A stretch of DNA of 64,000 nt. Source: Takakia lepidozioides (lineage: Eukaryota; Plantae; Bryophyta). The position numbers and the translations under genes are program-made. Positions 18,030 to 44,500 of the stretch are shown in pieces (the stretch's first letter is position 1; each line of letters begins with the position of its first letter). Where the stretch lies: the NCBI GenBank assembly GCA_030704615.1, contig CM060734.1, forward strand, positions 58,900,001-58,964,000, in the 5' to 3' direction. The notes below the pieces were generated by a model, which searched no databases, had not been told where the DNA came from, and saw only the letters and a list, made by a program, of their open reading frames with translations.

Positions 18030-18815
18030 CCTCATATCTATGACCAAATTATGGGGGAAAGGCTGATGCCAGACCAGGTCAAGTTCAACTGTGTTCTCAA
18101 TCCCGTGTACAAGCCTGGGTCCCCTGGAAACAGGTAAAGAGGTCCATGCTGCCATCAGCGAAACTGGAGTTGCAACAGATTATATCATTCTGCTTATTGA
18201 CATGTATGCCAAATGTGGTAGCATGAAGAATGCGTCTCAAGTGTTTTGTAGTATGGCTGAACGGGATGTGATCTCATGGAGTGCAAAGATCGCAGGTTGT
18301 GACCAGCATGGCTATGCTAGGGAGGCTGTGCGAGATGCAACAGGAAGGCTTGAAGCCGAACGGTATCACCTTCATATGCCTATTCTCGGCATGTAGCCAT
18401 ATGGGCCTAGTGGATGAAGGCCTCACTACTTTGAGTCAATGAGTTACAATCATGGCCTTACTCCTACAGTTGAGCATTTTGGCTGCATGTGCGGACCTTC
18501 TCGGCCGGCAGACCGGGTGGTGAGGCAGAGGAGTTCATTAACAAAATGCCAATCAAACCAGGTTCTGCAGTGTGGATGGCCTTGCTTGGTGCCTGCAAAA
18601 TTCATGGTGATGTGGAGGTTGCAGAACGTGCGGTAAAAAGAATTCTGAAGAGTGATCCATAGGATGCTGCAGCTTTTGTGCTGCTCTCGCACATCTATGC
18701 TGCAGCAGGCAGGTGGGACAATAAATCAGAGGTGAGAAAAATGATGGAGCGAAGAGGTAGTGGGAAGGAGCTAGGGTGCAGCTGCATTGAGGTTCATGAC
18801 TGGGTGCGAACATCA
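18030..18815 (+). pseudogene. Degraded PLS-E class PPR gene fragment (more distant paralog)
   Basis: LIDMYAKCGS..VFCSMAERDVISWS, HGLTPTVEHFGCM, LGACKIHGDVEVAERA, VLLSHIYAAAGRWD and a PG-box-like GCSCIEV; multiple frameshifts and stops. Confidence 0.85.
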
Positions 18816-19478: not shown

Positions 19479-19612
19479 TTGTCACGCAGTGGAATGCAGT
19501 GACGCAGCGGGTGAGTTCACGAGTTCATCTCGAAATCCATGACCACCTTAGAATTGAACGCAATTTCGCAAGCTCTTGCACCGGTTACTGTAATGAACTG
19601 TCATTGAAGATT
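19479..19612 (+). repeat. Inverted, diverged copy of the exon1/intron1 junction of the haloperoxidase-like gene
   Basis: Aligns by eye with the reverse complement of 5517-5654 (VTQWNAVTQR|gtgagt...gaactgtcattgaagatt). Confidence 0.85.
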
Positions 19613-19752
19613 GCCGGGTTGGTTCTGGCATACCCTTACCTATACCTTTGCACATACCCCGCCCGACTGGGCACCTACCAGTACCAGGAGATGGTGGATG
19701 ATCTGAGTAGCTACTGAAGCAAGACACTTCCATCTTTACAAGAAAACATCCT

Positions 19753-22700
19753 TTAGTAATCCCCACAAGAACAAATCCCATCTTCAAAGTGGTGAAAGCG
19801 GTTAGCGTCCCGTACAACAATTGCTCGGCCAACAATCTTTGAGATGAATTTGGTGGAGGTGTGGCAGTCACCACACACTCTAAGATTCTTGATGAGACGG
19901 AGAGGCGTCCTAGGGGTCGTGCTGATCAGCCCAAAACCAATGGCCAGCTTCTCACTGTGGTGGCAAAGAGAAAATTCCTTTTCCTCCTCCCCCACATCAT
20001 GCACAAAGCGCGTGTCAGGCACATACCCCGTCTCCTTCATCTGCCCAGACAATCTTCTCAGCTCAGCATGGATTTCCTTAATTCTGGGATGCAACTTGTC
20101 ATCTACAACAAAGGTGTGCACCCTGTTGCCAACCTCAATGCAGCAGCGACCTGGCTCCTTTCTAACCCCTCTGACCTTCATCATTCTTCTCACCTTTGCA
20201 GTATCATCCCACCTGCCAGCTGCAGCATAGATGTTTGAGAGCAACACATAAGTCGCGGCATCCTATTCATCCCACGTGAGGACAGATGTTGCCGCACGTT
20301 CAGCCATCTCCACATTGCCATGGATTCTGCAGGCACCAAGCAAGGCCTTCCACACCACAGCATCTGGATTGATTGGCATTTTATTAATCAGGTCCACCGC
20401 CTCATCCAGTTGTCCCGCACGTCCAAGAAGGTCCACCATGCAGCCAAAGTGCTTTACTGTTGGAGTGACACCATGATCTTGACTCAGGGAAGCAAAGTGG
20501 CGTCTTCCTTCATTCAGTAGGCCAGCGTGGCTGCATGCTGAGAGAACAGAAACAAAGGTGATACTGTCCGGCTTCATGCCGTTCTTTTGCATTCCTTCAA
20601 ACAGTTGCACGACCTCCCTATGACAACCATGCTGTGCATATCCTGAGATCATCGCGTTCCACGACACCACATTTCGTTCAGCCATATTGTCGAACACTGC
20701 CTTTGCATCCTCGATGCACCCACATTTCGCATACATGTCCACGAGGGTATTGTTCAGAATCACATCTGGTACAATTCCAGCTTTGGCGATGCAACCATGC
20801 ATCTCTTTGCCCTTTTCCAGGGCTGCCAGGCTTGCACACGCACTGCAAACGCACACAAACGTGATGTGGTCGGGCTTCACCCCTTCCCCCATCATTTCCT
20901 CATAGGTCTCCAAAGCCTCCATTCCGCGCCCCTGCTGTGCATATCCTGTGATCATCGCGTTCCACGACACCACATTTCGTTCAGCCATATTGTCGAACAC
21001 TCCTTTTGCATCCTCGATGCACCCACATTTGGCATACATGTCCACGAGGGTATTGTTCAGAATCACATCTGGTACAATTCCAGCTTTGGCGATGCAACCA
21101 TGCACCTCTCTGCCCTCTTCCAGGGCTGCCAGGCTTGCACATGCACTGCAAACGCACACAAACGTGATGTGGTCAGGCTTCACCCCTTCCCCATCATTTC
21201 CTCATAGGTCTCCAAAGCCTCCTTCCCGCGCCCCTGCTGTGCATATCCTGCAATCATCGCGTTCCACGACACCACATTTCGTTCAGCCATATTGTCGAAC
21301 ACTCCCTTTGCATCCTCGATGCACCCACATTTGGCATACATGTCCACCAGGGTATTGTTCAGAATCACATCTGGTACAATTCCAGCTTTGGCGATGCAAC
21401 CATGCACCTCTTTGCCCTTTTCCAGGGCTGCCAGGCTTGCACACGCACTGCAAACGCACACAAACGTGATGTGGTCCGGCTTCACCCCTTCCCCCATCAT
21501 TTGCTCATAAGTCTCCAAAGCCTCCATCCCGCGCCCCTGCTGTGCATACCCTGCGATCATCGCGTTCCACGACACCACATTTCGTTCAGCCATATTGTCG
21601 AACACTTCTTTTGCATCCTGGATGCACCCACATTTGGCATACATGTCCATGAGGGTGTTGTTCAGGATGACATTTGGTACAATTCCAGCTTTGGCGATGC
21701 AACCATGCATCTCTTTGCCCTTTTCCAGGACTCCCAGGCTTGCACACGCACTGCAAACGCACACAAACGTGACGTGGTCGGGCTTCACCCCTTCCACCAT
21801 CATTTGCTCATATGTCTCCAAAGCCTCCATCCCGCGCCCCTGCTGTGCATACCCTGTGATCATCGCGTTCCACGACACCACATTTCGTTCAGCCATATTG
21901 TCAAACACTCCTTTTGCATCCTGGATGCACCCACATTTGGCATACATGTCCACGAGGGTATTGTTCAGCATCACATCTGGTACAATTCCAGCTTTGGCAA
22001 TGCAACCATGCAACTCTTTGCCCTTTTCCAGGACTCCCAGGCTTGCACACGCACTGCAAACGCACACAAACGTGATGTGGTCCGGCTTCACCCCCTCCCC
22101 CATCATTTCCTCATAGGTCTCCAAAGCCTCCTTCCCGCGCCCCTGCTGTGCATATCCTGTGATCATCGCGTTCCACGACACCACAGTTCGTTCAGCCATA
22201 TTGTCGAACACTCCCTTTGCATCCTCGATGCACCCACATTTTGCATACATGTCCACCAGGGTATTGTTCAGAATCACATCTGGTACAATTCCAGCTTTGG
22301 CGATGCAACCATGCACCTCTTTGCCCTTTTCCAGGGCTGCTAGGCTTGCACACGCACTGCAAACGCACACAAACGTGATGTGGTCCGGCTTCACCCCTTC
22401 CCCCATCATTTCCTCATAGGTCTCCAAAGCCTCCTTCCCGCGCCCCTGCTGTGCATACCCTGCGATCATCGCGTTCCACGACACCACATTTCGTTCAGCC
22501 ATATTCACGAACACTCCTTTTGCATCCTCGATGCACCCACATTTCGCATACATGTCCACGAGGGTGTTGTTCAGGATCACATCTGGTACAATTCCAGCTT
22601 TGGCGATGCAACCATGCACCTCTTTGCCCTTTTCCAGGGCTGCCAGGCTTGCACACGCACTGCAAACGCACACAAACGTGATGTGGTCGGGCTTCACCCC

Positions 22701-23894
22701 TTCCCCCATCATTTGCTCATAGGTCTCCAAAGCCTCCATCCCGCGTCCCTGCTGTGCATACCCTGCGATCATCGCGTTCCACGACACCACATTTCGTTCA
22801 GCCATATTCACGAACACTCCCTTTGCATCCTCGATGCACCCACATTTCGCATACATGTCCACCAGGGCTGTGTTCAGGATGACATCTGGTACGATTCCAG
22901 TTTTGGCAATGCAACCATGCACCTCTTTGCCCTTTTCCAGGGCTGCCAGGCTTGCACACACATTGCAAACGCACACAAACGTGATGTGGTCGGGCTTCAC
23001 CCCTTCCCTCATCATTTGCTCATAGGTCTCCAAAGCCTCCATCCCGCACCCCTGCTGTGCATACCCTGCGATCATCGCGTTCCACGACACCACATTTCGT
23101 TCAGCCATATTGTCAAACACTCCCTTTGCATCCTTGATGCACCCACATTTCGCATACATGTCCACCAGGGCAGTGTTCAGGATGACATTTGGTACAATTC
23201 CAGCTTTGGCGATGTCGCCATGGACCTCTTTGCCCTTTTCCAGGGCTCCCAGGCTTGCACACGCATTGCAAACGCACACAAACGTGATCTGGTTGGGCTT
23301 CACCCATTCACGCACCATTTGCTCATAGGTCTCCAAAGCATTCCTACCACACCCATGCTTGGTAAATCCTGCCAACATTATATTCCACGTGATCAAAGAT
23401 CGTTGAGGCATTCTGTTGAACACTTGGTGAGCATCCATGATGCTCCCGCACTTAACATACATGTTGACAAGGGTGTTGAGTAGAAAAACATTTGGCGTGA
23501 ATCCACTTTGGATAATGTGAGTGTGCACCTGCTTTCCAGCTTCCAGGCCTTTCAACTTGATGCACTTATGCAAGAGACAGACATACGTATCTGAATCTGC
23601 TGAAATGCCTCCTTGGTTTAAAGCCTGTAGAGCCTCTTTCAGTCTGCCTGCCTCACAAAGCATCTTCACATGCCCAGGAGTGCCAGAAGAGGCATTGGGG
23701 AGTCGCTCTCTTGATCCTCTTCCAGAAGCCGTGGTCATGGTTGAGGTGCCTGATTTTATCAACTGTGCCGCTGCAGCTGCTGCCTTTAGTTGACCATCTA
23801 CCCATGCAGGTTTCTTGTAGCTATTGATGCACAGGGAATCATAGGTAATCTTGTGCTTGAAATCTGGCCCTCTTGGACGAATCTGGACACACAC
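19753..23894 (-). pseudogene. PLS-E1-E2-DYW PPR RNA-editing factor pseudogene with expanded PLS array
   Basis: ORFs 21180-23894, 20263-21183 and 19753-20247 are collinear with the 27682-30315 protein. Lesions: 1-nt deletion at about 21190, CAG>TAG at 20263-20265, one-codon deletion (RFVHDV), and a 4-nt deletion removing the terminal Trp (GDY*). Confidence 0.93.
20680..23110 (-). repeat. Tandem 303-bp PLS-triplet repeats (8 QQG-type units)
   Basis: 101-aa period (P 35 + L 35 + S 31), near-identical at the DNA level. Confidence 0.95.
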
Positions 23895-25240
23895 TCTACT
23901 CCTGCTCCTTCAGCTATCCATGCCTCTGCACAAATCATGCATACATCCTTGCCTTGCTGCTAGCAGCTGACAATGACAGCCTAGATTAGTTCTAGGAAAC
24001 ACCCAAACTCAGCTTGTCACACTAGTTCCTATGCTGAATTGCGTCTGCTACGATCTGTAATCTAACAGGTATTCACCTTTTTGTTTCGGTTGTCCCACCA
24101 TTGACTGGCTGTTTTTCGATACTTTCCTGTTTTCACATTGGCAGTATCATGTCAAAGTCACTCCAAACTAGATCCACTCAACCAGCTGACTTGCAGAGAT
24201 CAACACGGAAATTTAGGGCCGGTTCTGATAAGAGGGAAAAACAGGGTGAAATGTGTTGAAGAAGGTGCCTTCATTACCAGTGCCTGATTTTATTGATTGT
24301 GCCGCTGCTGCTGCTGCGGCTTCCAGTTGACCATCTACCCATGCAGGTTTCTTGTAGCTATGCTTCCACAGGGAATCATAGGTAATCTGGAGATTGTAAT
24401 CTGGCCCTCTTGGATGAATCTGGACCCACACTCCATCCCTGCTCCTTCAGCTATCCATGCCTCTGCACAATTCATGCATACATCGTTGCCTTGCTGCTAG
24501 CAGCTGACAATGACAGCCTAGATTTGTTCTAGGGAACACCCAACTCAGCCCATCACAATAGTTCCTATGCTGAATTGCGTCTGCTCTCTGTAATATAACA
24601 GGCATTCACCTTGTTGCCTCGGTTGTCCCACCATTGACTGGGGTCAGTAAAGTATTCATTCCACAGCTTCTCCTCACCTCTGTTACCTGTTTTTCGATAC
24701 TTTCCTGCTGCCACATCAGCAGTAACTTGTCAAAGTCTCTCCAAACTCTCCAAACCACCACAGATCCACCCAACGAGCTAACTTACAGAATTCAAAATGC
24801 AAATTCAGGGCCGAGTCTGATGAGAGGGCAAAACAGGCTGAAATAGGTCGAAGAAGAAGGTGCCCTCACCACATTGTCCTTGACCCTGTGTCATGACCCA
24901 TGGAGGATTGGACCGACCATCAACCCAAAAGGACCTCTTGTGTGTGCTGCTTGTGTCTGTAGTCAGGTAATGTCCGATTGGTCTGTGAGAACCACCACGG
25001 TGCAGCTGAGCAGGCGGAGATTGAAACACGGCCTGCTAAGACCAAGCTGACTCTCCCAAGAACCTTGTAATCATCAGGAAGAATACCAAATCATGGTACT
25101 AACAGGAGCCAAGAGCCCACATTTGCAGGATGGACAAACTTCTTCACATCGTACATTAAGAAAAAGCCACACCTTGCGATTGCGGTTGTCCCACCATCGT
25201 GAAGGATCTTTAAAAAACTCGTGCCAGCTCTGCTCCGTGC
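23800..25240 (-). pseudogene. Upstream exons encoding three intron-split OSB-type PDF motifs of the minus-strand PPR gene
   Basis: WHEFFKDPSRWWDNRNRK|gt (~25235-25174), LWNEYFTDPSQWWDNRGNK|gt (~24705-24610), ag|IHPRGPDYNLQ (24419-24279), SQWWDNRNKK|gt (~24125-24078, partly deleted), ag|IRPRGPDFKHK (23882 onward). Confidence 0.7.
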
Positions 25241-25939
25241 TCCAAGGTAGAGGTTTGTGCTCGAATTTCCGACAGCATCAACATTTTGACAAGGTCCTTT
25301 ACTGAGGGGTGCTAGTGAGCTTTCAACCACATTCATGCAAGTTGTTTTGGGCTCCATTGGGCTCTGCACGATGAGGAACAACGAACATGTCCAGACTTAT
25401 ACAGATGCTAACCCAGCTTATGTTTGCAGTCTGGAGATTGTTGTAGAGTGGTCTCTGAAATCGTCCAGGGAGGGAAGGTCTTGGCATTTAAGTTTTTCTA
25501 ACGTTCCAATTTATGTACCCCAAGTCGTTCAAAAAATAAAATCAGCCAAAGCCGGTGGGGCTGTCCGAAAGGGTGGGTACATATTGCATGCGGGCCCCAC
25601 ATGGCTATTGCATGTGAAAGTGGCAATTGCATGTGAGACCCATCTGGCGGCTACATGGAAGCGCTAACCACTAGTAGGAGCCATCAGAAGGGCACGACGA
25701 CGAACCGGTGGTCATGTAGGCCCGTGACCACTGCCACATTGGAAGAGCACAGTAATATCTTTGATGTAAGTTCGGTAAAAAGCTCAGAGTCTGGAGTTCG
25801 TTGTTCCTCATCGTGCAGAGCCCAATGGAGCCCAAAACAACTTGCATGAATGTGGTTGAAAGCTCACTAGCACCCCTCAGTAAAGGACCTTGTCAAAATG
25901 TTGATGCTGTCGGAAATTCGAGCACAAACCTCTACCTTG

Positions 25940-27500
25940 GAGCACGGAGCAGAGCTGGCACGAGTTTTTTAAAGATCCTTCACGACGGTGGGACAACCGC
26001 AATCGCAAGGTGTGGCTTTTTCTTAATGTACGATATTGTGAAGAAGTTTGTCCATCCTGCAAATGTGGGCTCTTGGCTCCTGTTAGTACCATGATTTGGT
26101 ATTCTTCCTGATGATTACAATGTTCTTGGGAGAGTCAGCTGGGTCTTAGCAGGCTGTGTTTCAATCTCTGCCTGCTCAGCTGCACCGTGGTGGTTCTCAC
26201 AGACCAATCCGAAATTACCTGCCTACAGACACAATCAGCACACACAAGAGGTCCTTTTGGGTTGATGGTTGGTCAAATCCTCCATGGGTCATGACACAGG
26301 GTCAAGGACAATGTGGTGAGTGCATCTTCTACTTCGACCTATTTCAGCCTGTTTTTGCCCTTAATTTGGATATTGAATTCTGTAAGTTAGCTCGTTGGGT
26401 GGATCTGTGGTGGTTTGGAGTGACTTTGACAAGTTACTGCCGATGTGGCAGCAGGAAAGTATCCAAAAACAGATAACAGAGATGAGGAGAAGCTTTGGAA
26501 TGAACACTTTTCCGACCCCAGTCAATGGTGGGACAATCGCAAAAAGGTGAATGCCTGTGGGAAGCAGACGCAAGTCAGCATTGCAATCCGAAATTACCTG
26601 ACTACAGACACAAGCAGCACACACAAGAGGTCCTTTTGGGTTGATGGTCGGTCAAATCCTCCATGGGTCATGACACAGGGTCAAGGACAATCTGGTGAGG
26701 GCACCTTCTTCTTCGACCTATTTCAGCCTGTTTTGCCCTGAATTTGGATATTGAATTCTGTAAGTTAGCTCGTTGGGTGGATCTGTGGTGGTTTGGAGTG
26801 ACTTTGACAAGTTACTGCCGATGTGGCAGCAGGAAAGTATGCAAAAACAGATAACAGAGATGAGGAGAAGCTGTGGAATGAACACTTTTCCGACCCCCGT
26901 CAGTGGTGGGACAATGGAGGCAGAAAGGTGAATGCCTGTTGGAAGCAGACGCAAGTCAGCATAGGACCTAGTGTGATAAGTATGGTTGGGGTGTTTGCTG
27001 GAAGAATTCTAGGCTGTCATTATCAGTTGCCAGCAGCAAGGCAAGGATGTGTACATGATTTGTGCAGAGGCATGGATAGCTGAAGGAGCAGGGATAGAGT
27101 GTTGGTCCAGATTCATCCAAGAGGGCCAGATTTCAAGCTCCAAGATACCTACGATTCCCTGTGGAAGGATAGCTACAAGAAACCTGCATGGGTAGATGGT
27201 CAACTGGAAGCCGCAGCAGCAGCGGCACAATTGATAAAATCAGGCACTGCTAATGAAGGCACCTTCTTCAACACATTTCACCCTGTTTTTCCCTCTTATC
27301 AGAATCGGCCCTAAATTTTCATGGTGAATTCTGCAAGTTAGCTGGTTGAGTGAACCTTTGATAGTTTGGAGTGACTTTGACATTATACTGCCAATGTGAC
27401 AACAGGAAAGTATCCAGAAGCAGGTAACCGAGACGAGGAGAAGCTGTGGAATGAATACTTTTCTGACCCCAGTCAATGGTGGGACAATCGAGGCAAAAAG
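25940..27500 (+). CDS. Putative upstream exons encoding OSB-type PDF motifs of the plus-strand PPR-DYW gene (partly degenerate)
   Basis: Half-motif exons end at GT donors (~26009, ~26547, ~26928, 27500). Second halves are TNPKLP(A/D)YRH (~26203, ~26585) and IHPRGPDFK (27111, 27694). Some junctions look damaged: a 1-nt frameshift in motif 1b and a GT>CT donor change at about 27250. Confidence 0.55.
26205..26960 (+). repeat. ~380-bp tandem duplication of a PDF exon/intron block
   Basis: 26205-26580 is repeated at 26585-26960; only one copy is present in the opposite arm. Confidence 0.85.
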
Positions 27501-27693
27501 GTGAATGCCTGTTGGATTACAGAGAGTAGCAGATGCAATTGAGCATAGGAACTAGTGTGATAAGTTGAGTTGGGTGTTTCCTAGAACAAATCTAGGCTGT
27601 CATTGTCGGCTGCTAGCAGCAAGGCAAGGATGTCTGCATGATTTGTGCAGAGTCATGGATAGCTGAAGGAGCAGGGATAGAGTGTGGGTCCAG

Positions 27694-30315
27694 ATTCATC
27701 CAAGAGGGCCAGATTTCAAGCACAAGATTACCCATGATTCCCTGTGGATCAATAGCTACAAGAAACCTGCATGGGTAGATGGTCAACTAAAGGCAGCAGC
27801 TGCAGCAGTACAGTTGATAAAATCAGGCACCTCAACCATGACCACGGCTTCTGGAAGAAGATCACGAGAGGGAGTCCACAATGCCTCTTCTGGCACTTCT
27901 GGGCATGTGAAGATGCTTTGTGAGGCAGGCAGACTGAAAGAGGCTCTACAGACTTTAAACCAAGGAGGCATTTCAGCAGATTCAGATACGTATGTCTGTC
28001 TCTTGCATAAGTGCATCAAGATGAAAGGCCTGGAAGCTGGAAAGCAGGTGCACACTCACATTATCCAAAGTGGATTCACGCCAGATGTTTTCCTACTCAA
28101 CACCCTTGTCAATATGTATGTTAAGTGCGGGAGCATCATGGATGCTCACCACGTGTTCAACAAAATGCCTCAACGATCTTTGATCACGTGGAATATAATG
28201 TTGGCAGGATTTACCAAGCATGGGTGTGGTAGGAATGCTTTGGAGACCTATGAGCAAATGATGCGTGAATGGGTGAAGCCCAATCAGATCACGTTTGTGT
28301 GCGTTTGCAGTGCGTGTGCAAGCCTGGGAGCCCTGGAAAAGGGCAAAGAGGTGCATGGTTGCATCACCAAAGCTGGAATTGTACCAGATGTGATTCTGAA
28401 CAATACCCTCGTGGACATGTATGCCAAATGTGGGAGCATCGAGGATGCAGAGGGAGTGTTCAACAATATGGCTGAACGAGATGTGGTATCGTGGAACACG
28501 ATGATCGCAGGGTATGCACAGCAGGGGCACGGGATGGAGGCTTTGGAGACCTATGAGCAAATGATGGGGGAAGGGGTGAAGCCCGACCACGTCACGTTTG
28601 CGTCCGTTTGCAATGCTTGTGCAAGCCTGGCAGCCCTGGAAAAGGGCAAAGAGGTGCATGGTTGCATCGCCAAAGCTGGAATTGTACCAGATGTCATCCT
28701 GAACACAGCCCTGGTGGACATGTATGCCAAATGTGGGTGCATCAAGGATGCAAAGGGAGTGTTCGACAATATGGCTGAACGAAATGTGGTGTCGTGGAAC
28801 ACGATGATCGCAGGGTATGCACAGCAGGGGCGCGGGATGGAGGCTTTGGAGACCTATGAGCAAATGATGGGGGAAGGGGTGAAGCCCGACCACATCACGT
28901 TTGTGTGCGTTTGCAGTGCGTGTGCAAGCCTGGCAGCCCTGGAAAAGGGCATAGAGGTGCATGGTTGCATCGCCAAAGCTGGAGTTGTACCAGATGTGAT
29001 TCTGAACAATACCCTCGTGGACATGTATGCGAAATGTGGGTGCATCGAGGATGCTCAAGGAGTGTTCGACAATATGGCTGAACGAACTGTGGTGTCGTGG
29101 AACGCGATGATTGCAGGATATGCACAGCAGGGGCGCGGGATGGAGGCTTTGGGGACCTATGAGCAAATGATGGGGGAAGGGGTGAAGCCCGACCACATCA
29201 CGTTTGTGTGCATTTGCAGTGCGTGTGCAAGCCTGGCAGCCCTGGAAAAGGGCAAAGAGGTGCATGGTTGCATCGCGAAAGCTGGAATTGTACCAAATGT
29301 GATTCTGAACAATACCCTCGTGGACATGTATGCGAAATGTGGGTGCATTGAGGATGCAAAGAGAGTGTTCGACAATATGGCTGAACGAAATGTGGTGTCG
29401 TGGAATGCGATGATCGCAGGATATGCACAACATGGTTGTCATAGGGAGGTCGTGCAACTATTTGAAGGAATGCAAAAGAACGGCTTGAAGCCGGACAGTA
29501 TCACCTTTATATCTGTTCTCTCTGCATGCAGCCACGCTGGCCTACTTAATGAAGGAAGACGCTACTTTGATTCCCTGAGTCAAGATCATGGTGTCATTCC
29601 GACAGTAAAGCACTTTGGCTGCATGGTGGACCTTCTTGGACGTGCGGGACAACTGGATGAGGCGGTGGACCTGATTAATAAAATGCCAATCAATGCAGAT
29701 GCTGTGGTGTGGAAGGCCTTGCTTGGTGCCTGCAGAATCCATGGCAATGTGGAGATGGCTGAACGTGCAGCGACATCTATCCTCACGTGGGATGAACAGG
29801 ATGCCGCAACTTATGTGTTGCTCTCAAACATCTATGCTGCAGCTGGCAGGTGGGATGATACTGCAAAGGTGAGAAGAATGATGAAGGTCAGAGGGGTTAG
29901 AAAGGAGCCAGGTCGCTGCTGCATTGAGGTTGGCAACAGGGTGCACACCTTTGTTGTAGATGACAAGTTGCATCCCAGAATTAAGGAAATCCATGCTGAG
30001 CTGGGAAGATTGTCTGGGCAGATGAAGGAGGCGGGGTATGTGCCTGACACGCGCTTTGTATTGCATGATGTGGGGGAGGAGGAAAAGGAATTTTCTCTTT
30101 GCCACCACAGTGAGAAGCTGGCCATTGGTTTTGGGTTGATCAGCACGACCCCTAGGACGCCTCTCCGTCTCATCAAGAATCTTAGAGTGTGTGGTGACTG
30201 CCACACCTCCACCAAATTCATCTCAAAGATTGTTGGCCGAGCAATTGTTGTACGGGACGCTAACCGCTTTCACCACTTTGAAGATGGGATTTGTTCTTGT
30301 GGGGATTACTGGTGA
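27694..30315 (+). CDS. PLS-class PPR protein with E1-E2-DYW cytidine deaminase domain (C-to-U organellar RNA editing factor); main exon
   Basis: Open frame with 17 L/S/P motifs, PG box KEPGRCCIEV, HSEKLA, CGDC and terminal DYW. The track's GTG start at 27682 probably lies in an intron (27501-27693, GT..AG); splicing it out joins WWDNRGKK to IHPRGPDFKHK. Confidence 0.95.
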   Translation: MHPRGPDFKHKITHDSLWINSYKKPAWVDGQLKAAAAAVQLIKSGTSTMTTASGRRSREGVHNASSGTSGHVKMLCEAGRLKEALQTLNQGGISADSDTYVCLLHKCIKMKGLEAGKQVHTHIIQSGFTPDVFLLNTLVNMYVKCGSIMDAHHVFNKMPQRSLITWNIMLAGFTKHGCGRNALETYEQMMREWVKPNQITFVCVCSACASLGALEKGKEVHGCITKAGIVPDVILNNTLVDMYAKCGSIEDAEGVFNNMAERDVVSWNTMIAGYAQQGHGMEALETYEQMMGEGVKPDHVTFASVCNACASLAALEKGKEVHGCIAKAGIVPDVILNTALVDMYAKCGCIKDAKGVFDNMAERNVVSWNTMIAGYAQQGRGMEALETYEQMMGEGVKPDHITFVCVCSACASLAALEKGIEVHGCIAKAGVVPDVILNNTLVDMYAKCGCIEDAQGVFDNMAERTVVSWNAMIAGYAQQGRGMEALGTYEQMMGEGVKPDHITFVCICSACASLAALEKGKEVHGCIAKAGIVPNVILNNTLVDMYAKCGCIEDAKRVFDNMAERNVVSWNAMIAGYAQHGCHREVVQLFEGMQKNGLKPDSITFISVLSACSHAGLLNEGRRYFDSLSQDHGVIPTVKHFGCMVDLLGRAGQLDEAVDLINKMPINADAVVWKALLGACRIHGNVEMAERAATSILTWDEQDAATYVLLSNIYAAAGRWDDTAKVRRMMKVRGVRKEPGRCCIEVGNRVHTFVVDDKLHPRIKEIHAELGRLSGQMKEAGYVPDTRFVLHDVGEEEKEFSLCHHSEKLAIGFGLISTTPRTPLRLIKNLRVCGDCHTSTKFISKIVGRAIVVRDANRFHHFEDGICSCGDYW

Positions 30316-30874
30316 AAGGATGTTTTCTTGAAAAGATGCGAGTGTCTTGCTTCATCATTGATCTGTGTAGCTACTCAGACCATTTCCTGAGAGTATTGAC
30401 CATGATGTACTGTTGAGTGCATTTCTGTACTGTTGAGTCATAGAGGATTGGTCATAGACGCCTGTTCAGTCCTCACGACTCTGTATTCTACCAATCTCTG
30501 CCCCCAGTGATGATTCACAGTTCGCCGTTGTTGTCTAGATGCTCGCTTGTAAGCCCGCTACCCTGGGGCAAGTGTAGGACACCTTAGTGGTTGATTTCAA
30601 TCATGTTCTAAACTACTAGTCTGTCATGCACTCTCAAGGCCGTCATTTCTGAGCTATTTCTACATATTCAGTACTCTGAGATCTGTCTGAACCTTGCTCA
30701 CAACTTACAGCGTTCACGCTATGCAATGACTACGCAAAGACAGGTGACACATCGTGTACAAATCTATTGTTTCCACTTCTCTCATTGCTTCATAATACAT
30801 GACGTTCATACAACCCATGATCAGATTCACTCGGTGGCTAAGTGACCAATCCGGTTACTAATTCTCTCACACCA

Positions 30875-31501
30875 TGTTGCGAAGTAGAACTAGTGGCTTC
30901 ACTATCTCCACTCATCTTGTCTGACTGGTCCCTAGACCTTTGAGAAGAGGACTGTCTACTGTAGGGTTTGAAAACCGCTAGCTTGGAAACAAAGCCTAAT
31001 TGACCCTGCAAACAAACAGAACTTGTTCTAGGCTCCCTTCAAACCCTGATCCCCTTTGTTCTTACTTTATGCTATGGACTACAAGCCACTCGCAATAGTA
31101 AGCAACACTTAATGGACCCTGTATGAAGCTGAACCTTCAAGGTTCCTCTCCTCTCTGAGCTGAGACTCTCTTTGCTAAGACCTCTCTCAGTCCAGGACAA
31201 AGAATGAAGACAACAAGTGAATACTTCATTACATTCAGACCTAATTGTCACACACGCATATATCACCGAGAAGGCATCTCTCGGTGGTATGTCGGTTCAG
31301 CCTGTCGGTTCTGACCGACAGGCTGAACTGGGTGCCTTGTCACTGAACTCTTGGTTCAATGATATATTGTTAGCCTATCAAAAAACTAAGGACTAAGTCA
31401 AAAACCTTCCTTGTTTTACTGCCAACAAAACTCCTAACCAGCCTTGTTAATTGCTAACTAAAGGAACTAACCACTTCTGAGCTGAATTACTCTATTCAAC
31501 A
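30875..31501. mobile_element. Solo LTR (627 bp) with 5-bp TSD CACCA
   Basis: tgttg...caaca termini, flanked by cacca at 30870-30874 and 31502-31506. The paralogous inverted arm (~63025-63050) lacks it. Confidence 0.88.
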
Positions 31502-31849
31502 CACCATACACGGTATTTACTGCTCTGCATCTCCACATTGCGTTCTCTTGGTCTACAATCTGTTTTGGTCTAAAACAGTCTCAACGGCGCCGCCTCGGTC
31601 CCCTTTTTTCTCATCATCTACAGTGCTTCAGCCACCACTCACTCCTTTAGCGCATAAGAACCATCAACTATTCTGAACACGAACTTGCAGTTTTATCCCT
31701 AGGGGGCTTGATCTCTGTGAGCTATTCTATTGATTAATATATCTATGGTTCTTGTTTGCAGGTTTTTTGGGGCCTTGTGTGCAGAGCCAACTAAAATAGG
31801 GTCTAATCAGTGTTGTACAGGTATGTGCCAGTCGGGCGTATAGGTAAGG

Positions 31850-33415
31850 GTATGCCAGAACCAACCTAGCTGGTGTATCATGTAGGCTATACCTTGGGTG
31901 TGTGTAAAACTTAGGGTTTAGGGTTGCCAACATACCCAAACTGATACCGTACCAGTCACAGTAGCTTGCGGAGCAATACTGCGATTGCGAATAGTACTTA
32001 GGGGGGAGTGTTTCGAGATGGGAGGGGTAGCAGTTATGGCATTAGGGTGCGCCATGTTGTGTTTGCTATGGGAGGGGTTTCATTTTTCCGGCTGGATCTT
32101 TGATGTGGGGAGGCGCAATCGATTGAGCATATCGGCTTTGTGATTGCAATTTTTCTTTTTTTACCTTTTGTATGTTGCCCTCAATCTGGTTTTTGTTTTC
32201 AGCTTTGAATGGAGTATGATGAATGTTGGGGTAATGTTGGGGTATACCATACCATTGTACATGCTGCCCTAGTATATCATTTGAGTTTTTGCCATACCCA
32301 TGCCTAGGACCAGGTATCTCAAAATTGGAAATACCAATACCCATCCTATAACCTACCTTGGCCAGTCCTAATCTACACTGGGCCTATCAGTTGGACCCAA
32401 CAACCAAGTTGGACCGGACCTACTAGGACCAGTCTGGTATGCCAAAATGGACATACCAGTACAACACTGGTACCAACTTAATAAGTAATACTGACTTAGT
32501 AGTAAGTAACTAGTACTAACTTAGTAAGTATTAAGAGGCAATGGAAGAGAGCGAGAGCGCGCTTCTTCTCCTTTATATACCCTCTCAGTGCGGTGGGCCC
32601 AACCCCCGTCTAGAAGGTTGCCCCCAGATGCCAGAACCAACTGGTGTGTCATGCAGCCTATACCCTAGGTGTGTGTAGAACTTAGGGTTTAGGGTTCCAA
32701 ACATACCCAAACTGCTACCGTACAATCACAGTAGCTTGCGGAGCAATACTGTGATTGCGAATAGTACTTGGGGGGGGAGTGTTTCGAGATGGGAGGGTAG
32801 CAGTTATGGTGTTAGGGTGCGCCATGTTGTGTTTGTTATGGGAGGTGTTTTCATTTTTGCAGCTGGATCTTTGATGTGAGGAGGCGCAAAAAGATTGAGC
32901 ATATCGGCATTGTGATTGCAACCATTTGTATGTTGCCCTCAATCTGGTTTTTGTTTTCAGCTTTGAATGGAGTATGATGAATGTTGGGGTATACCATACC
33001 ATTGTACATGTCGCCCTAATATATCATTTGAGTTTTTGCCATACCCATGCCTAAGACCAAGCTTGGTCGGTCCTAATCTATATGAGGGCCCTATCAGTTG
33101 GACCCAAAATAAAAATATAGACGCCTCCGAAGGGTGCGTAAATTATGGTGTCTCTTCACCACAAGGGCTACTGCCTTGCAGCTGAAAGGTGTCCACCTTC
33201 ACGACACACCAGACCGTGGTTTGAACCCACAAGCACATCCAACGTGGTATGTGCCCATTACAAAAGGACCCAACAGCCAAGTTGGATCTACCAGGACCAA
33301 TCTAGTATGCCAAAATGTACATACCAGTACAACATTGGTAATATTAACGTAGTAGTAAGTAACTAGTACTAACTTAGTAAGTAGTAAGAGGCAGTGGAAG
33401 AGAGCACGCTTCTTC
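31850..33415 (+). repeat. ~750-bp tandem duplication, each copy with a short TTTAGGG-type motif
   Basis: 31850-32570 resembles 32630-33415; ttagggtttagggtt at 31911 and 32682. Confidence 0.85.
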
Positions 33416-36140: not shown

Positions 36141-39100
36141 GCAACACGGGCAAAACCACATTTTTCAATATACGCAGGGAAAGGGGATCCTGATGTACAC
36201 ATTAGCCAATTTCAGCACATGTGTATTGTGAACAATGAGAATGGCGATGATGCCAAGATGAGACTGTTTCCTTGTTCACTTATCAAGAAAGCAAGTGAAT
36301 GGTATGCAAGATTTCCAGCTAATCATTTCCTAACCTAGAATGGCCTTAGTACGGCATTCCGGAACAGGTTCAGGACAAGCAAAACTGAGGATGAAGTGTA
36401 TGGAAGTTTACAACAATTCAGGCAAAAGAAGCATGAAACTGTTGAGGAGTACATGGAAAAGATGGAGTTAATGATGAAAAATCTGACTGCTGTACCAGCG
36501 CCAGGGTTACAGAAGACCTGAATTGTGAGTGGACTAAGACCAGAGTTGCAAAAGAAAGTGGATATGTTACCCTATAATACAGTGGAGGAGGCATTTGAAA
36601 CAGCCAACAGGATTGAGCAATTGGGAATGCTCATAAGAGATAAAAGGGATGATGATGACTCTGAGGATGAGTCAGATGAGGAAGAAGAGCAAGAGCTCAA
36701 AAGGAAGAGTAAGAAGAAGAAAAGTTGAAGAGGGAAAACTATGAAAAAAAGGCTGGAGGAGATCTTGAAGAAGTATGCCACGGAGGCTGCAACACATTGG
36801 AGGAATGGTGTTTGGTGTGCAAAATACCAGAATGAAGGCCATACCGCAGCTGAATGCTACATGAAGGAGAAACACTGTACTATCTGTAAAATGGATAACC
36901 ATTCTACTGAGAATTGTTACTACAACATAAGAACAGCTGCAAGAGAACCTAGGCAAGTAAGGGTGCATCAAGTGCAGCCCCAGCCAAGAAGAAACAATGA
37001 TCAGGACCACTATGGAAGGCTTGGTGGTTATAACAATGGTATGGAAAGGAGAGGTAATCCAAGAGGGAATTACCAAGGCAATCCCAGGGGCAACTATCAG
37101 GGTAATCCAAGGGGGAATTACCAGCCAGGGAATCAGGATTACAGAAATAATCCCAGAGCAGATCAAGGGCGAGGACCCAATGGTGAAGAACTGTGTTACT
37201 ATTGTAATCACGCAGGACATTGCAAGGCAGCCTGTTCATTCTGGATTAGACACCAGAATGAGATGAGAGCTCCTGTGAATGAGGGGCCAGTGGTGGCAGC
37301 TCACATGGTTAGGCCATGTGTTGTATCAGAAGTAAGTACAATGATAGTAACCAGAAGCAAAGCTAAATTAATACCTCTAGTAGATGAGGAAGATGATGAT
37401 AATGAAGATGGCAGTGATGTGCCTGAAGATGATGAGGCTTGGAGAGATGAGAAGGAACTGCACAAGGAAGTGGCTGATACCAAAAGGGAAATGCAGAAGA
37501 GTACTGATATCCCTATGGCAGATTCCTCTGTTTCTGGAAGAGAAGATGAAGAGAGTGAAGATGAAGTGAAGAAAGAAGTTGCACAAGTGCAGGGTAATGA
37601 AGGGACTTTGGCTGAAGTAATATGTGAGTCCAAGGCGGAGATTACCATTGGACAACTATTGGTTGTGGCACCTCATTGTAGGCACAGGCTGTATCAAGCA
37701 ATCAATCAGATTGCCCATGTGACAGAGAACACAGGCGTGAACAGCTGGGTGACCAGTTATAATGTGAAGCCGGAAGGGCGAGAAACAGTCATGGACTTTG
37801 ATGATTCTATGCCAGTAATCCAATTGAGAATTGGAAGCACAGACCTGACTGATGTACTGATAGATGGAGGCTCTGGAGTGAATATCATGACAGACCAATT
37901 AAGGTTGAAGCTTGGTCTAAGTAACATGAAACCAGCCCCATTCACAGTAACAATGGCAGATCAAAGAAGTGTTCAGCCATTAGGCTTGATAAGAGGAGTC
38001 AAGATACAGATTCAAAAGATGATCTTTAAGATCACAGTGACTGTATTGAAAATGGATGATGTCATGGAAGCTTACTCCTTATTGTTGGGTCGACCATGGC
38101 TGAGACAGGCCAGGGTATTCCATGACTGGAATTTCCAGTTGCTAACTGTGCATGATGGGAAGCGCAAGATACAAATCACCACTAAGAAATCTAGTAGACT
38201 ACCTGCTACGAGAAGACCTCGAGGAGTCAGAGAGTATGACTGGAGAAAAGGACTTGATGAGGAGCAGGAAGCTACCCTGTTCGCTGCACACCTAGAGTGG
38301 GAGCAGGTTGCAGAAATGCAACTGGAAGGCCTAAGTTGTTTAAAAGGTATCTGTTGTGGTGTAGTAACAGCAACACCAATTGAGGGTGAAACAAGTAGTT
38401 ACCCACCACATTTCTATGAGGAAAGAGAGGGAGAAATGGAAATCCTAGAAGAACTAGCCACTGTAAGTTTACATGATGAAGTAGTGATTGGTTGGACAAT
38501 CACAGCTGATGAGCAAGTGAGAGAAGTGAATGTAGGAACTGAGAAGGAACCGAGAATGGTGAAAGTAGGGGCTGACTTGGAGCCAGAATTCTTTGAGGAA
38601 GCTAAGAGTATGTTCATCAATACAGAGATGTATTTGCTTAGAGCTATGAGGATTTGAAAGGGATACCACCTGAGATCTGTCAGCATAAGATTGAACTGGA
38701 ACCAAGGTCAGTACCAATCAAACAGGCAAGGTACAGAATGAATCCCAACTATGCACAGAAGGTTGGGGAAGAGATCAAGAAGTTGGCTGAGGCTAAGTTC
38801 ATATACCCGATAGAGAATACAACTTGGTTGTCACCCATTGTGATAGTTCCCAAGAAGAATGGTAAACTGAGAGTTTGTGTAAACTATAAGAAGTTGAATG
38901 CTTGTACAAAGAAAGATCCCTTCCCTTTGTTATTCACAGAAGCGGTGCTGGACACTATGGCAGGCCATGAGATGTACTCATTCATGGATGGCTTCAGTGG
39001 GTATAGCCAAGTGCAAGTGGTAGAAGAAGACCAGGAAAAGACAGCTTTCATCACAGATTGGGGTGCTTATGCATACAAAGTCATGTCTTTTGGACTTTGT

Positions 39101-41439
39101 AATGCACCAGCAACTTTTCAGAGAGTGATAAGTGAATCTTTCCATGAGTATCTGGATGATTTCATGCAGGTGTTCTTAGATGACTTCAGTGTGTACAGTT
39201 CTAAGAATGAGCACTTACATAAATTGGAGTTATGTTTGGCCAGATGCAGGATGAGAGGTCTGGGCCTGAATCCAGAGAAGTGTACTTTCTGTGTGAACTC
39301 AGGGGTACTTTTGGGACACATTGTGTATAAGAGGGGACTGCTTGTGGATCCCAGAAAGACAGAGGCTATTAAAGCCTCTCCACCACCAGGAAATTTTAAG
39401 AGTCTAAGGAGATTCCTTGGACAAACCAATTATTACAGAAGATTTGTCAGACGGTATGCACAGATAGCAGCACCATTGAGCAAGCTTCTGAAGAAACATG
39501 CAGTGTTTGCATGGACAGCTGAATGTCAACAGGCTTTTGAGGAACTTACATTGTCAATAACAACTACAACCCTCACTGGTATGTAGTATTTCATGTTCAC
39601 TGTGATGCCTCAGGAGAAGCGTTGGGAGCAGTGTTAGCCCAAAATGTTACAGGAAACATAGATTCACCTGTGTACTATGCTAGCAGGTTGATGAACAGTG
39701 CTGAAATGAACTATAGCACAACTGAAAGAGAAGCATTGGCAATGATATATGCAGTCAAGAAATTCAGGCATTACCTATTGGGAAGGAAGTTTCTGTTTTA
39801 TGTGGATCATCAGGCTCTGATTTATCTGGTGAACAAGCCTTTGATAAGTGGCAAGATAGCAAGATGGTTAATAATCTTGCACGAGTTTGAGTTTGAAGTT
39901 GTTTACAAGCCTGGCCGTTTGCATCTTGTGGCAGATCACTTGTCACGCCTAGCAACAGGAGAGCCCGCCACGGGAGTCGACGACCAACTACCTGATGCGA
40001 GTTTATTTGCAGTGGAGGTGCAGGGAAGTGCAGATGATTAGTTAGATTGGCAGTGGCCAATCAGATACTACCTTACTCATGGTCAGTGCCCACCTAGTTA
40101 TGGGAAGGAGCAGATGAAGAGAATAGCTATCAAGGCTTTACCTTACACTATGATAGGGGGCAGAATGTATAAGCTAGGACCTGATGGAGTTCTTAAACGA
40201 TGCTTGTACCAACATGAAGTAAATAAAGTTTTGGAGGAAGTTCATAAGTAAAGGAGTGGCTGGAGGTCATTTTGGAGAAGAGACTACCAGTAGAAAGATA
40301 CTACTTGTAGGTTATTGGTAGCCTACCTTGTTCAAGGATGTACACAAATATTGCAAAAGTTGTAATGAGTGTCAGAGGCTAGGACCATTGCAGAGATATG
40401 GGAAGATGGCTTTGCATCCTACAATGCCTACTGAACCATTTCAGAAATGGGGACTAGACTTTGTTGGACCAATTAACCCACCAACCCGAAATACACAGAA
40501 CAAGTATATAATCACAGCCACTGATTATACTACAAAGTGGGTGGAAGCTAAAAGCTCTGAGGGACAACACAGCTAAGTCTACAGCAAGGTTCTTGTATGA
40601 GAACATACTTACAAGATTTGGTTGTCCCCTGGAATTTATCAGTGACCAGGGAAGTCACTTCATTAATGAGACCATAGAACTATTGACTAAAGAGTTCATG
40701 ATTGTGCATATGAAGAGTACAACCTATTACCCACAGGGTAATGGGCAGGCAAAGGCCACCAACAAAATACTATGTACTATCTTGGCTAAGATAGTCAATG
40801 CAAACAGAACAGATTGGGATACAAAGTTGCTGACAGCTTTGTGGTCATACATGACTTCATATAAAGTCACCACTAAGTATACACCATTCCAATTAGTTTA
40901 TGGTATGGAAGCTTTACTTCCAGTGGAGTTCTTGTTATCTACCATGAGAACTGAATGGGGAAGGAGAATGGAATTGGAAGATTCAATTAAGGTCAGGAAA
41001 CATGAATTATACCATGTGGAAGAAGTACGTGCTGATGCAGCGGATAACATGACCAGAATTCAGATGATGAGGAAGGATCAGTTTGATGAAGGTAAATTAA
41101 AGACTTTTAAGACAAGAGATTTGGTACTGTGGTTGTAGAAGAAGGGAAAGATTAAAGCTTCTAAGCTTAAATCACCATGGAAAGGTTCTTATGTCATACA
41201 GAAGATGTATGATAACAACACAGCCATGTTACAAACCATAAACAAAGATATGCTGGGAAGAGTCAATGCCAATAAGTTGAAGGGATACAGTGGTATCCAT
41301 GACAAACCATTGCGGCACGATTTGCATGTTGAAACACAGAAACAGTCACGGGCTGCACCGGTGATACCAACGGAGTATGGAGCACTTGTCATTAAGCCGA
41401 GTGTGTATGGCCAGGGCCGTAGGTACAGGTGTTCGCATA

Positions 41440-41570
41440 GCTATCACAGCCTACCACAGTGTGACACAGTCTATCACAGCCCACCACAGTGTCACACAGT
41501 CTATCACAGCCCATCACAGCATCACACAGCCTATCACAGCTCATCACAGTCTGACATAGCCTAACACAGC
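41440..41570 (+). repeat. ~21-bp tandem repeats built from cacag units
   Basis: cacagtctatcacagcccac-like units; a related array lies at 46105-46250. Confidence 0.8.
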
Positions 41571-41599
41571 CCACGCGGGTTGTACAGTCCATAGGGTTA

Positions 41600-44500
41600 G
41601 TGACAGGTGGATGCGGGTTAACGTCAGAAAAGTGGTTGGCGGGTGAAAGGACAGCTTGGAAGTCAAACTCGAAGAATGTGCCACGCGGACAGGGGAAGAC
41701 GGAGGCATGTCTAAAAACGAACACGTGGCCACTAGGGCGAAGCACACCGCGGTGCATATATTGCAAAAGTGGGTGTCATCATGCCAGAGGACAAACAGGG
41801 CCGTCAAAGTACCTAACCGGTACAGCAGCCAAAACTATTTGTGGGCCCATTAATGCATTCAGGGCAAAGGTAACGAAACCCTTTACGAATACAAAAAAAG
41901 GGGACTTTTGCCACATGTGTTGTCCTAGTGGACATTCCAGGTGGGAATGTCCACTGAGGAGGGTAAAGTTAAGAAGTTACCCAAGGAGGCAACAGCCAAT
42001 CAGGAGCGAGAATTTCATGCAGGTGGTTCCCTCTAAGGAACAAGAACAAGAAATTAGAAGAGTTATGAGCGGAAGAGTCGGGGTGACTCCGAATAACCAG
42101 TGTCTCGACGGGAGGGGCAATCAAAGCTATAGCTTTGTAGTTGTGGCGGATATTACAGATTATACGCTCGCTTTACTTCTTACGCAGTGGCGCAAGGACA
42201 GACGGGTTGAGAGTACATTCTCTCTCACTCGATACTCGCAAGCCCCACATGCTTACACGCACTTACCCATTCCATTATGTGCCAACCATACTTTTATGCT
42301 CTACGCCTTGCAAGCTTTCTTAGAGCTATTTCAAACAAGGCCATCTTGTTTGTCTGGAATGAAGAGAATTCGGGGAATGGAGGATGTCAGGGTGAAGAGC
42401 ACCACGATTATGCAGAAGCAGACAATTGCTACACCTCAGGCAGTGCAGTTGTGGAAGGAGTTGCGATTGGAGGGACTGCTACGCAAGGAATGGTCCTTGC
42501 ATCATAGGGCGTTCATGATACAATTCATTCAGAACTTTGAACCTCAGACGGGAGTTACACAAGTGAGGGGAGTAGATATAGAGATTATTCCCCAATACTT
42601 ACAGCAATTGTTTGAATTGCCATCAGGCCGTGTAAATGTCGATGAGCACAGGGCAAGATTGCAGATAGGCAATTTGTTCCAAGAAGGGAGTTTCATTAAG
42701 ACTCAGGGATACACTTGCACCAAGGCCGAGTACACAGGGTTAAAAGAAGTTGGTCAGGTTCTGAACGTTGTGTTTGCCATGAAACAAAACCAACAATACC
42801 TTAGCAGATCCTACACGGAGGAGTTACTGAAAGCCTTGAGGGGGGAAGATGTGGCTTGGGCGGACTTAATGTACAATGGTTTGGTGGAAGAGATGAAGCG
42901 CTTACAAGGCACTGCTGCTAAATCTCCAATCATTGTGTTTGGCCCAGTGATTGCGCAAATTATTCTTGATTCTTGCATACTTGATGCGCGAGAACGTAAG
43001 GAGATGGGAGTGTTTGAGACAACAACCACTGCAATTGAGGAGCATGGCTCTTCACATGGTGAAGGTGGATTGGAAGGGCGGCACCAGTCCAAGAGACAAA
43101 AGAGGGACACGACTATAGTGGCAGATCCACTAGCTTCAAGGAAACCGCAAAATGATGATATTTCCATAGCTCTTGTGCAAGATGGGGAACAACAACACCG
43201 AGGGCTGTTATTACTGGAAGCACAACCTTTGGAGAGGGAAGAAGAAGTCACTTCAATACCACAGCCATCACAGCCAGTTGACTCGGTTGTCTCAGAGGTC
43301 CCTTAGTTAGTACATGTTGTTGCACCAGAGCCTATTGCCCTGGAAGGAGAAGTGTTGGACATCCCACTACAGAGCAGGTCGTGGCAGACATTGAGAAGGG
43401 TGACCTTCTCTATGAAAACTCTGGCTTGGTCAGGGAACCAGTGGTACCAGAGGTGCAGAGTTTGTCCAAGGAAATCCCTGCTGTGCATGTAATACCCAAA
43501 CCTTTGGCGGAGGTTCCGGAGGTAGAATGTAAGGGCACTGCAGCGCCTGTGGAGAATGGGGTCGTTCAGGAAGAGGATCTTGTGGGAACATGGCCTGAAT
43601 GGTTGGTGAAACATCACACTGTGGAGGATCAGGGAGAATAGCAGCAAGTTCACCAGGAAGATCCACATCAGGCCATGCTTATGAGTTCTATAAGCAGGAC
43701 ACTCAATTTGTTGGGCACTTATGTGAAATCCCATGTTCCATCTACACAATTGGCACCTTTGAGGGAGGAACTCAAGCAGGAGTGTGAGGCTAGAATTGCC
43801 ACTGAGTGTGCAAACAAGGTGGATGTGGAGGCCAACCTCAAGTTGCAGAAAGAATTGGAGGACACCGAGGCTGTCCTGCAGCTAGCAAAGGGGAATCTGA
43901 TTGAAGCAGGTCTGGAGCAGGGGAAATTGCATGAAGCACATAAGCAGCAGCTATACCAATTACAGGTGCAGCATGAGGGCAAATTGCAGGAAGTGAAGCT
44001 GCTTCATACAGAGTTGGAGACAGTTCATCAGAGAATGACCATACAATGTGCCACACTAACAACTGTTCTGGAGCAAACTGCGTTAGAAGTTAACAGACAA
44101 GCAGAGAGATGTATGATGGCCGAGGCTGAGATAGTAGAGCAAGGGAAACTTATTGCTGATCTGAAGGCTACTCTCCGTCGCAATGAGGATACTTTTCAAC
44201 AATACAGTCAGGTTGAGGCTGAGAAGGAAAGTTCATCCTGCAGTTGCAGCAATCACTCACGGGCCACAAGAATGAACTCTTTGTGGCTAACAAGGCTTGG
44301 AAGGAAGCCAATAATCTGGCTGCTGCCTATGCGGCCCTGGTTGAACCTCATGCAAAGCGCATGGAGGCTTTACAGTAGCAATTAGATGTGTACAGACTCA
44401 AGGAGGAGCAGGCTCTCAAGGGTGCTACACAGGACTTGGTGGATAATCATCTTATGCAAGTATGGTTAATACAAGGCCCGGTAGAAGGGAAGGCACCACG

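Follow-up and report, generated by a model that had tools for sequence, protein, structure and literature searches.

A 64-kb stretch of DNA from Takakia lepidozioides (contig CM060734.1, positions 58,900,001 to 58,964,000), called the window here and used for all coordinates below, contains a 10.6-kb palindrome (19715-30354) that holds two divergent PLS-E-DYW PPR genes, one per arm, with outward transcription. We consider it probable that these genes are two divergent members of a very large, recently amplified PDF-PPR-DYW family of organelle C-to-U editing factors in a seed-free land plant, with a short plus-strand copy that is intact and a long minus-strand copy that is decaying. On the same assessment, gain and loss of the 303-nt cassettes from which the genes are assembled would be a real mutational mode of the family, and would amount at this locus to neutral turnover, with no new specificity arising from it. 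In plant organelles, PPR-DYW proteins determine which sites undergo RNA editing, and programmable C-to-U editors are based on them. Some lineages have hundreds to thousands of editing sites, and how they gain the factors to match is an open question.

The main exons of the two copies have the same build (Table 1), and Pfam searches detect PPR, E, E+ and DYW deaminase domains in both, with PPR, PPR_1, PPR_2 and PPR_3 matched at E values of 1e-46 to 1e-137. In the plus copy, the open frame extends from 27682 to 30315 (2634 nt, 877 codons) and includes a splice acceptor (...tccag/ATTCAT). The C-terminal matches of this copy are to E_motif (3.8e-21), Eplus (5e-05) and DYW_deaminase (2.2e-43, covering 1-93 of 93 positions). 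Its deaminase contains HSEKLA (HxE), CGDCH (the CxxC zinc ligands) and the terminal GDYW, and a PG box is present too. A GT..AG intron (27502-27693) splits the OSB-type PDF motif between the two exons of the plus copy, which join as ...WWDNRGKK/IHPRGPDFKHK...; the same motif is uninterrupted in the Diphasiastrum relatives P0006 and P0014. Judged by each sequence feature tested, both predicted genes are typical of the PLS-E-DYW class. The plus copy, intact and with a different code in each unit, is the likely working editor.

A sequence-only reading of this DNA had proposed that the minus copy is 1508 nt longer, equal to 5 x 303 nt minus 7 nt, and that it carries eight QQG-type triplets against three in the plus copy. 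The ORF (open reading frame) ends bear out the lengths (2634 versus 4142 nt), and the unit starts together with Tandem Repeats Finder (TRF) bear out the counts. TRF reports a period of 303 nt with 8.9 copies (94% match) at 20630-23339 and 3.9 copies (93%) at 28237-29429. One period, parsed by hand in the register starting VVSWN, encodes P1 (35), L1 (35) and S1 (31), or 101 amino acids (aa). Array order is the same in both copies: one 'TKHG' unit (starting at 28180 in the plus copy and 23396 in the minus copy), then the QQG units, then P2-L2-S2-E1-E2-DYW. QQG units begin at 28483, 28786 and 29089 (plus copy) and at 23093, 22790, 22487, 22184, 21881, 21578, 21275 and 20973 (minus copy). They are near-identical, as the same reading had stated, with 6-27 of 303 nt different between pairs and a mean aa identity of 0.91.

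We took residue 5 and the last residue of each motif as code positions, which gives six per 101-aa unit and leaves 95 others. The previously named differences at such positions (S5 N/T, S31 N/D/T and L35 D/N) are all present. Among all 11 QQG units, 4 of 6 code positions vary compared with 26 of 95 others (p=0.06, Fisher one-sided; a diversity permutation also gives 0.06). The corresponding numbers are 4 of 6 versus 13 of 95 for the three plus units (p=0.007) and 3 of 6 versus 20 of 95 for the eight minus units (p=0.13). An enrichment of variation at code positions is therefore found in the intact plus copy, but it is marginal over the 11 units and not significant in the minus copy.

The three QQG units of the plus copy have three different codes, and a single code, ND-VD-NN, recurs in 5 of the 8 QQG units of the minus copy. 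In the PPR code, as described by Barkan in 2012 and in later work, ND is said to read U and NN to read C or U. Under that code, the S and P motifs of the plus copy would run roughly S NS, P NN, S ND, P ND, S TN, P ND, S NT, P ND, S NN, P2 ND and S2 GD, while the code of the minus copy comprises 33 motifs. Because the minus array mostly repeats one code (U-?-C/U), its predicted target would be a periodic (U-x-Y) stretch of more than 20 nt, which is an implausible organelle sequence. With five of eight units identical in code, the extra cassettes would give length and almost no information.

Set against its plus counterpart, the minus copy carries five lesions (Table 1), and its main exon breaks into three ORFs (23894-21180, 21183-20263 and 20247-19753). 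The DYW domain is recognisable, but it lies downstream of both a frameshift and a stop and is without its final W. The 7 nt by which the length difference falls short of five cassettes had been put down to small deletions. The total is correct, but the deletions are not harmless: they comprise the 1-nt frameshift and the 3-nt and 4-nt losses in the DYW domain. The description of the two genes as sister editing factors likewise fails for the long copy, which is not intact: a frameshift and a stop codon precede its deaminase. Three of the lesions lie outside homopolymers. Because only the frameshift resembles a consensus error, we read the minus copy as a pseudogene, and probably a young one. 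From P2 to DYW, 11 synonymous and 10 non-synonymous changes separate the copies (dS 0.056, dN/dS 0.26). This ratio at this dS suggests that most of the divergence took place under constraint and that the decay is recent.

Several observations bear on how the units were exchanged. In m0, the P and L motifs are near those of p0 (2 and 7 differences) and the S motif is near that of p1 (3 differences). The S5 change from N to T ('T-A' at S5/S6) lies on a 6-nt haplotype, with five other changes, in p1, m0, m1 and partly m5, and the L35 change from D to N lies in a block shared by m0 and m5. The four-gamete test fails for 79 of the 190 informative site pairs. The pairwise homoplasy index (PHI) gives p=0.002 when all 13 units are used (p0 and m0 included) and is not significant within the 11 QQG units alone (p=0.93). 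The mosaic units and the four-gamete failures fit unequal recombination or conversion. The earlier suggestion of unequal crossover or conversion among 303-nt modules is thus supported by the whole-triplet difference, the mosaic m0, the shared haplotype and the failing site pairs.

A maximum-likelihood tree of the units pairs p0 with m0 (100/100) and p1 with m1 (83/90), and the other nine units form a star in which plus and minus units are intermixed. A unit phylogeny had been put forward as a means of detecting mosaicism; it recovers these two pairs and no grouping by gene, but the rest is star-like. Since only two pairs are resolved, the five-unit difference corresponds to 2 versus 7 units of a homogeneous core. 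No clear minimum that would mark a higher-order repeat was seen in the minus array at shifts of 1-7 units (mean differences 14-21), and the pair m3/m6 stands out in that array with 6 differences.

The synonymous difference between core units has a median of 0.108, with nearest neighbours at 0.046-0.092. For the positional orthologues p0/m0 and p1/m1 it is 0.067-0.083, and for the flanks of the two copies 0.036-0.056, with a gene-copy dS of 0.04-0.08 overall. Because the divergence of the core units is about that of the copies, the cassette duplications are about as old as the gene duplication. The sequence-only reading had held that reprogramming of the target proceeds rapidly, and these values do not show such speed, since a nearest-neighbour synonymous proportion (pS) of 0.05-0.09 is similar to the dS between the copies.

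Under the explanation that we favour, each gene would read RNA with PLS triplets, several of which are near-copies of one 303-nt cassette. Misaligned homologous recombination between cassettes that are 93-98% identical would then add, remove and patch whole cassettes. The route may be unequal crossover, slippage, or conversion, the last of these within a gene, between the palindrome arms or with other family members. Misaligned recombination of this kind could explain why the homogeneous core numbers 2 units in one copy (plus) and 7 in the other (minus).

A search of protein databases returned no close relative from the same plant, and the top identity was about 60%. The closest proteins at this level come from Diphasiastrum, followed by Ginkgo, Cryptomeria, ferns, liverworts and Sphagnum. 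Many of the matches from Diphasiastrum, a lycophyte, have a self-identity of at least 0.9 at an offset of 101 aa across three to five triplets. When 20 such proteins are considered, P5, S5, S31 and P35 (in that order) are the most diverse of the 101 unit positions. Mean diversity in these proteins is 0.35 at code positions versus 0.10 elsewhere, a result reached by 0 of 20,000 permutations (p<5e-5). In their codes, position 5 is freely T, N or S, and the last position D or N. Unit consensuses of different Diphasiastrum proteins agree at 94% with one another but at only 62-70% with the cassette found in this window. By this comparison each lineage has its own standard cassette, and for Diphasiastrum the 94% identity suggests one standard PLS cassette used genome-wide.

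Unit number is unequal in 23 of 45 Diphasiastrum paralogue pairs (at least 88% identical over the last 330 aa). For example, P0006 and P0014, near-identical sisters annotated as full-length and each with the PDF motif, match in order from either end, offset by one triplet. These sequence comparisons suggest that three features hold at the level of the family: a near-uniform scaffold, variation in code residues, and gain or loss of whole triplets between close genes that look intact. The proposed role of module exchange as a generator of new editing specificities is thus matched by the family pattern in Diphasiastrum, namely code-position variation and sisters one triplet apart, but not by this locus, where no new target or specificity is demonstrated. 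Among the Diphasiastrum proteins P0005-P0100, the first unit of almost every protein is coded TD-VD.

Four public short-read runs were placed on 19600-24300 at a likeness of at least 98%, as Logan contigs of 60-135 nt, which number in the tens of thousands and none of which spans one unit. The best DNA run contributes 18,618 contigs, and its summed depth is roughly 1e4-7e5 inside the gene versus 302 in the flank, or roughly 30 to over 2,000 times the flank depth. Contig count and depth together indicate a very large multicopy family of near-copies. At two of the minus-copy lesions, the contigs contain no other letter (20265) and no indel (21189-21192), where single-base coverage is not verifiable. 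Some contig joints, with sides of 21-30 nt, skip 637, 799, 1820 or 2141 nt; none of these lengths is an exact multiple of 303, and the joints were taken as other family members.

The locus can also be read as adaptive, with both copies being working editors whose target was reprogrammed by the five-cassette difference and the code-position changes, so that the array serves as a generator of specificities. Code positions (S5, S31, L35 and L5) do vary, and their excess over other positions is significant in the plus copy. The C-terminal dN/dS indicates past constraint on both copies, variation in Diphasiastrum is strongly concentrated at code positions, intact sisters there differ by one triplet, and the minus-copy frameshift sits in a homopolymer. 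We nevertheless judge this reading unlikely. The four other lesions are not of the homopolymer type, and one of them is a nonsense codon ahead of the deaminase. The extra units bring no further codes, and the age of the units is about that of the copies, so the change was not rapid. Less probable still is that the long array, or the entire palindrome, is an assembly artefact in the form of a mis-joined or over-expanded repeat. Tandem 303-nt repeats amid hundreds of near-copies are hard to assemble, one unit exceeds the reach of every public contig, and the best DNA run contains only 65% of the sampled words of the stretch. However, all eight minus units are distinct (at least 6 differences in each pair) and none equals a plus unit. 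Moreover, the arms differ by about 5% plus many indels, unlike a hairpin or chimeric-read artefact, and there are no N letters in the window.

The direction of change is less clear-cut. An ancestor with about seven core cassettes might have given rise to the plus copy through the loss of five in one or a few unequal exchanges, in which case the short array would be derived and possibly selected. We give this contraction serious weight, while holding it to be somewhat less likely than not. The median synonymous difference is larger for the core units than for the two gene copies, the star tree mixes core units from both genes, and the code order NT then VN/NN is common to both arrays (p2-p3; m3...m5). 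Against this, the nearest-neighbour pS in the minus array is not above the values for p0/m0 and p1/m1, conversion from other family members can inflate distances, and the window holds no outgroup copy.

Several points weigh against our preferred explanation of an intact short copy, a decaying long copy and neutral cassette turnover. The exons were read separately against the reference, and 'intact' for the plus copy covers the two exons examined. The homopolymer frameshift in m7 is the only lesion of the consensus-error type and could be such an error. A protein truncated before E/DYW could still work with a deaminase in trans, as some PLS proteins do. Because the core units are about as diverged as the copies, the array may have either grown or shrunk. 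Finally, contigs of 60-135 nt neither confirm nor contradict the unit count or the lesions, and two probable RNA runs contain pieces of the family that are not assignable to either copy.

The window contains at least three members of the family plus an eroded PPR-E-DYW fragment. This fragment (18039-18812, plus strand) lies directly outside the left palindrome arm and has 41-60% aa identity to the plus copy. The 3' flank of the third copy (62261-63940) matches the flank of the plus copy (30254-32407) over more than 2 kb at 85-98%, and the plus copy may be more closely related to the third copy than to the minus one. Tandem PDF-like modules (378 nt x 2 and more) precede the main exon, at 26205-27314 on the plus strand and mirrored at about 24118-25397 on the minus strand. 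They read …EEKLWNEHFSDPSQWWDNR… / …HPRGPDFK…SLW…PAWV, and the PDF residues are lost in some modules. Long antisense ORFs of 313-454 aa lie within the triplet arrays (21402-22343 and 22380-23483 on the plus strand; 28093-29457 on the minus strand); they follow the periodicity of the repeat, of which they are most likely a by-product. Elsewhere, 36741-45990 contains a series of long plus-strand ORFs with strongly positive GC skew, one of which (38654-39586) has an RVT_1 domain (3e-26), and this run is probably a retroelement.

Table 1. Coordinates of the palindrome, its two PPR genes, their repeat units and lesions, and the third family copy.
Feature	Position	Strand	Description
Palindrome arms	19715-25397 and 25788-30354		85-95% identical
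Unique palindrome centre	25398..25787	.	390 nt
Plus-copy upstream exon	27396..27501	+	first half of OSB-type PDF motif (...EEKLWNEYFSDPSQWWDNRGKK)
Plus-copy main exon	27694..30315	+	PDF second half, linker, first P-L-S, p0, 3 QQG triplets, P2-L2-S2, E1, E2, DYW deaminase ending GDYW(stop)
Unit p0	28180..28482	+	LITWN.../TKHG type; code NN-VD-ND
QQG units p1-p3	28483..29391	+	codes ND-AD-TN, ND-VD-NT, ND-VN-NN
Minus-copy PDF exon	24078..24140	-	lacks 45 nt present in plus counterpart
Minus-copy main exon	19753..23894	-	same build as plus copy, 8 QQG triplets; 4142 nt
Unit m0	23094..23396	-	mosaic; code NN-VN-TN
QQG units m1-m8	20671..23093	-	m1 ND-VD-TN; m3 ND-VD-NT; m5 ND-VN-NN; m2, m4, m6, m7, m8 ND-VD-NN
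45-nt deletion in minus PDF exon	between 24109 and 24108	-	15 codons, ...GNRDEEKLWNEYFSD
1-nt deletion in unit m7	21189..21192	-	G4 run versus G5 in other units; frameshift, …MMGKG(stop)
CAG to TAG stop in E1	20263..20265	-	TWDEQD to TWDE(stop)D, upstream of deaminase
3-nt deletion in DYW domain	20002..20004	-	RFVLHDV to RFVHDV
4-nt deletion (GGTG)	19753..19756	-	makes TAA, drops terminal W; GDYW(stop) to GDY(stop)
Third family copy, last 20 codons	63941..64000	-	…GDYW(stop); cut by window edge, only 60 nt inside

A broader proposal can be made tentatively, and we hold it with more doubt than conviction. The PDF-PPR-DYW family of seed-free plants may be built from a lineage-wide standard 101-aa PLS cassette, with specificity residing almost only at residues 5 and last, and with cassettes reshuffled by unequal recombination between intact paralogues. 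The family would then be a natural counterpart of designer PPR editors, and this locus one by-product of the reshuffling, a failed long array. If true, reshuffling of a standard cassette would let hyper-editing lineages make new editing factors quickly. The family could supply factors at such a pace if one cassette is reused, code residues are mainly what varies, and cassette number changes between near-identical paralogues, in a manner resembling RFL genes and TAL effectors. Caution is needed, however, as array growth is not in itself adaptive. Since the longest array at this locus has a monotonous code and belongs to a decaying gene, a genome-wide census of intact versus broken copies would be needed before turnover is called a 'generator'. 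The literature searched contains no description of PLS triplets that are nearly identical, nor of paralogues that differ in triplet number; this search did not include Gutmann et al. 2020 (Mol Plant), the main survey of seed-free plants, so priority is uncertain.

The genes described here resemble known PLS-class PPR-E-DYW editing factors in their P1-L1-S1 triplets, P2-L2-S2, E1, E2 and DYW regions, and in the PG box, HSE, CGDCH and terminal DYW. They differ in that several triplets are cassette copies of about 91% identity, an intron-split OSB-type PDF motif stands in front, and the family is massively multicopy. The motifs of characterised editing factors are generally much more diverged than these cassettes. 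TAL effectors provide an analogy only: they too have near-identical tandem modules, specificity at few residues and a module number changed by recombination. Their fold is unrelated, they are bacterial effectors and their ligand is DNA, and variation at this locus is weakly concentrated at code residues, with a clear concentration only in Diphasiastrum.

Closer parallels exist among PPR proteins themselves. In the RFL P-class PPR clusters of angiosperms, residues 5 and 35 are under diversifying selection, crossing-over is unequal, and truncated copies or pseudogenes are numerous (PMC7380019, which cites Fujii 2011 and Melonek 2016 on these clusters). The likeness lies in clustered paralogues with fast turnover, represented here by three copies and a fragment in 64 kb and by mosaic units. 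In contrast, RFL proteins are P-class proteins without a deaminase, made of single 35-aa repeats and involved in male-sterility conflict, whereas the genes here are PLS genes with E and DYW domains and the family scaffold is far more uniform. In DOT4 of Poaceae, six PPRs were added to the array once the target had been lost, and the DYW domain is degenerating (PMC6424221). As in the minus copy, the PLS array is longer by a multiple of three motifs and the DYW domain degenerates. However, DOT4 is single-copy, is compared among orthologues over long times and has a proposed new function, whereas the long copy here has stops in the array and in E1. Designer PLS-DYW factors repeat one consensus P-L-S scaffold and are directed to their targets solely through changes at residues 5 and last (PMC8110955). 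Those factors are man-made, whereas the family in this window and in Diphasiastrum appears to reach a similar design by duplication.

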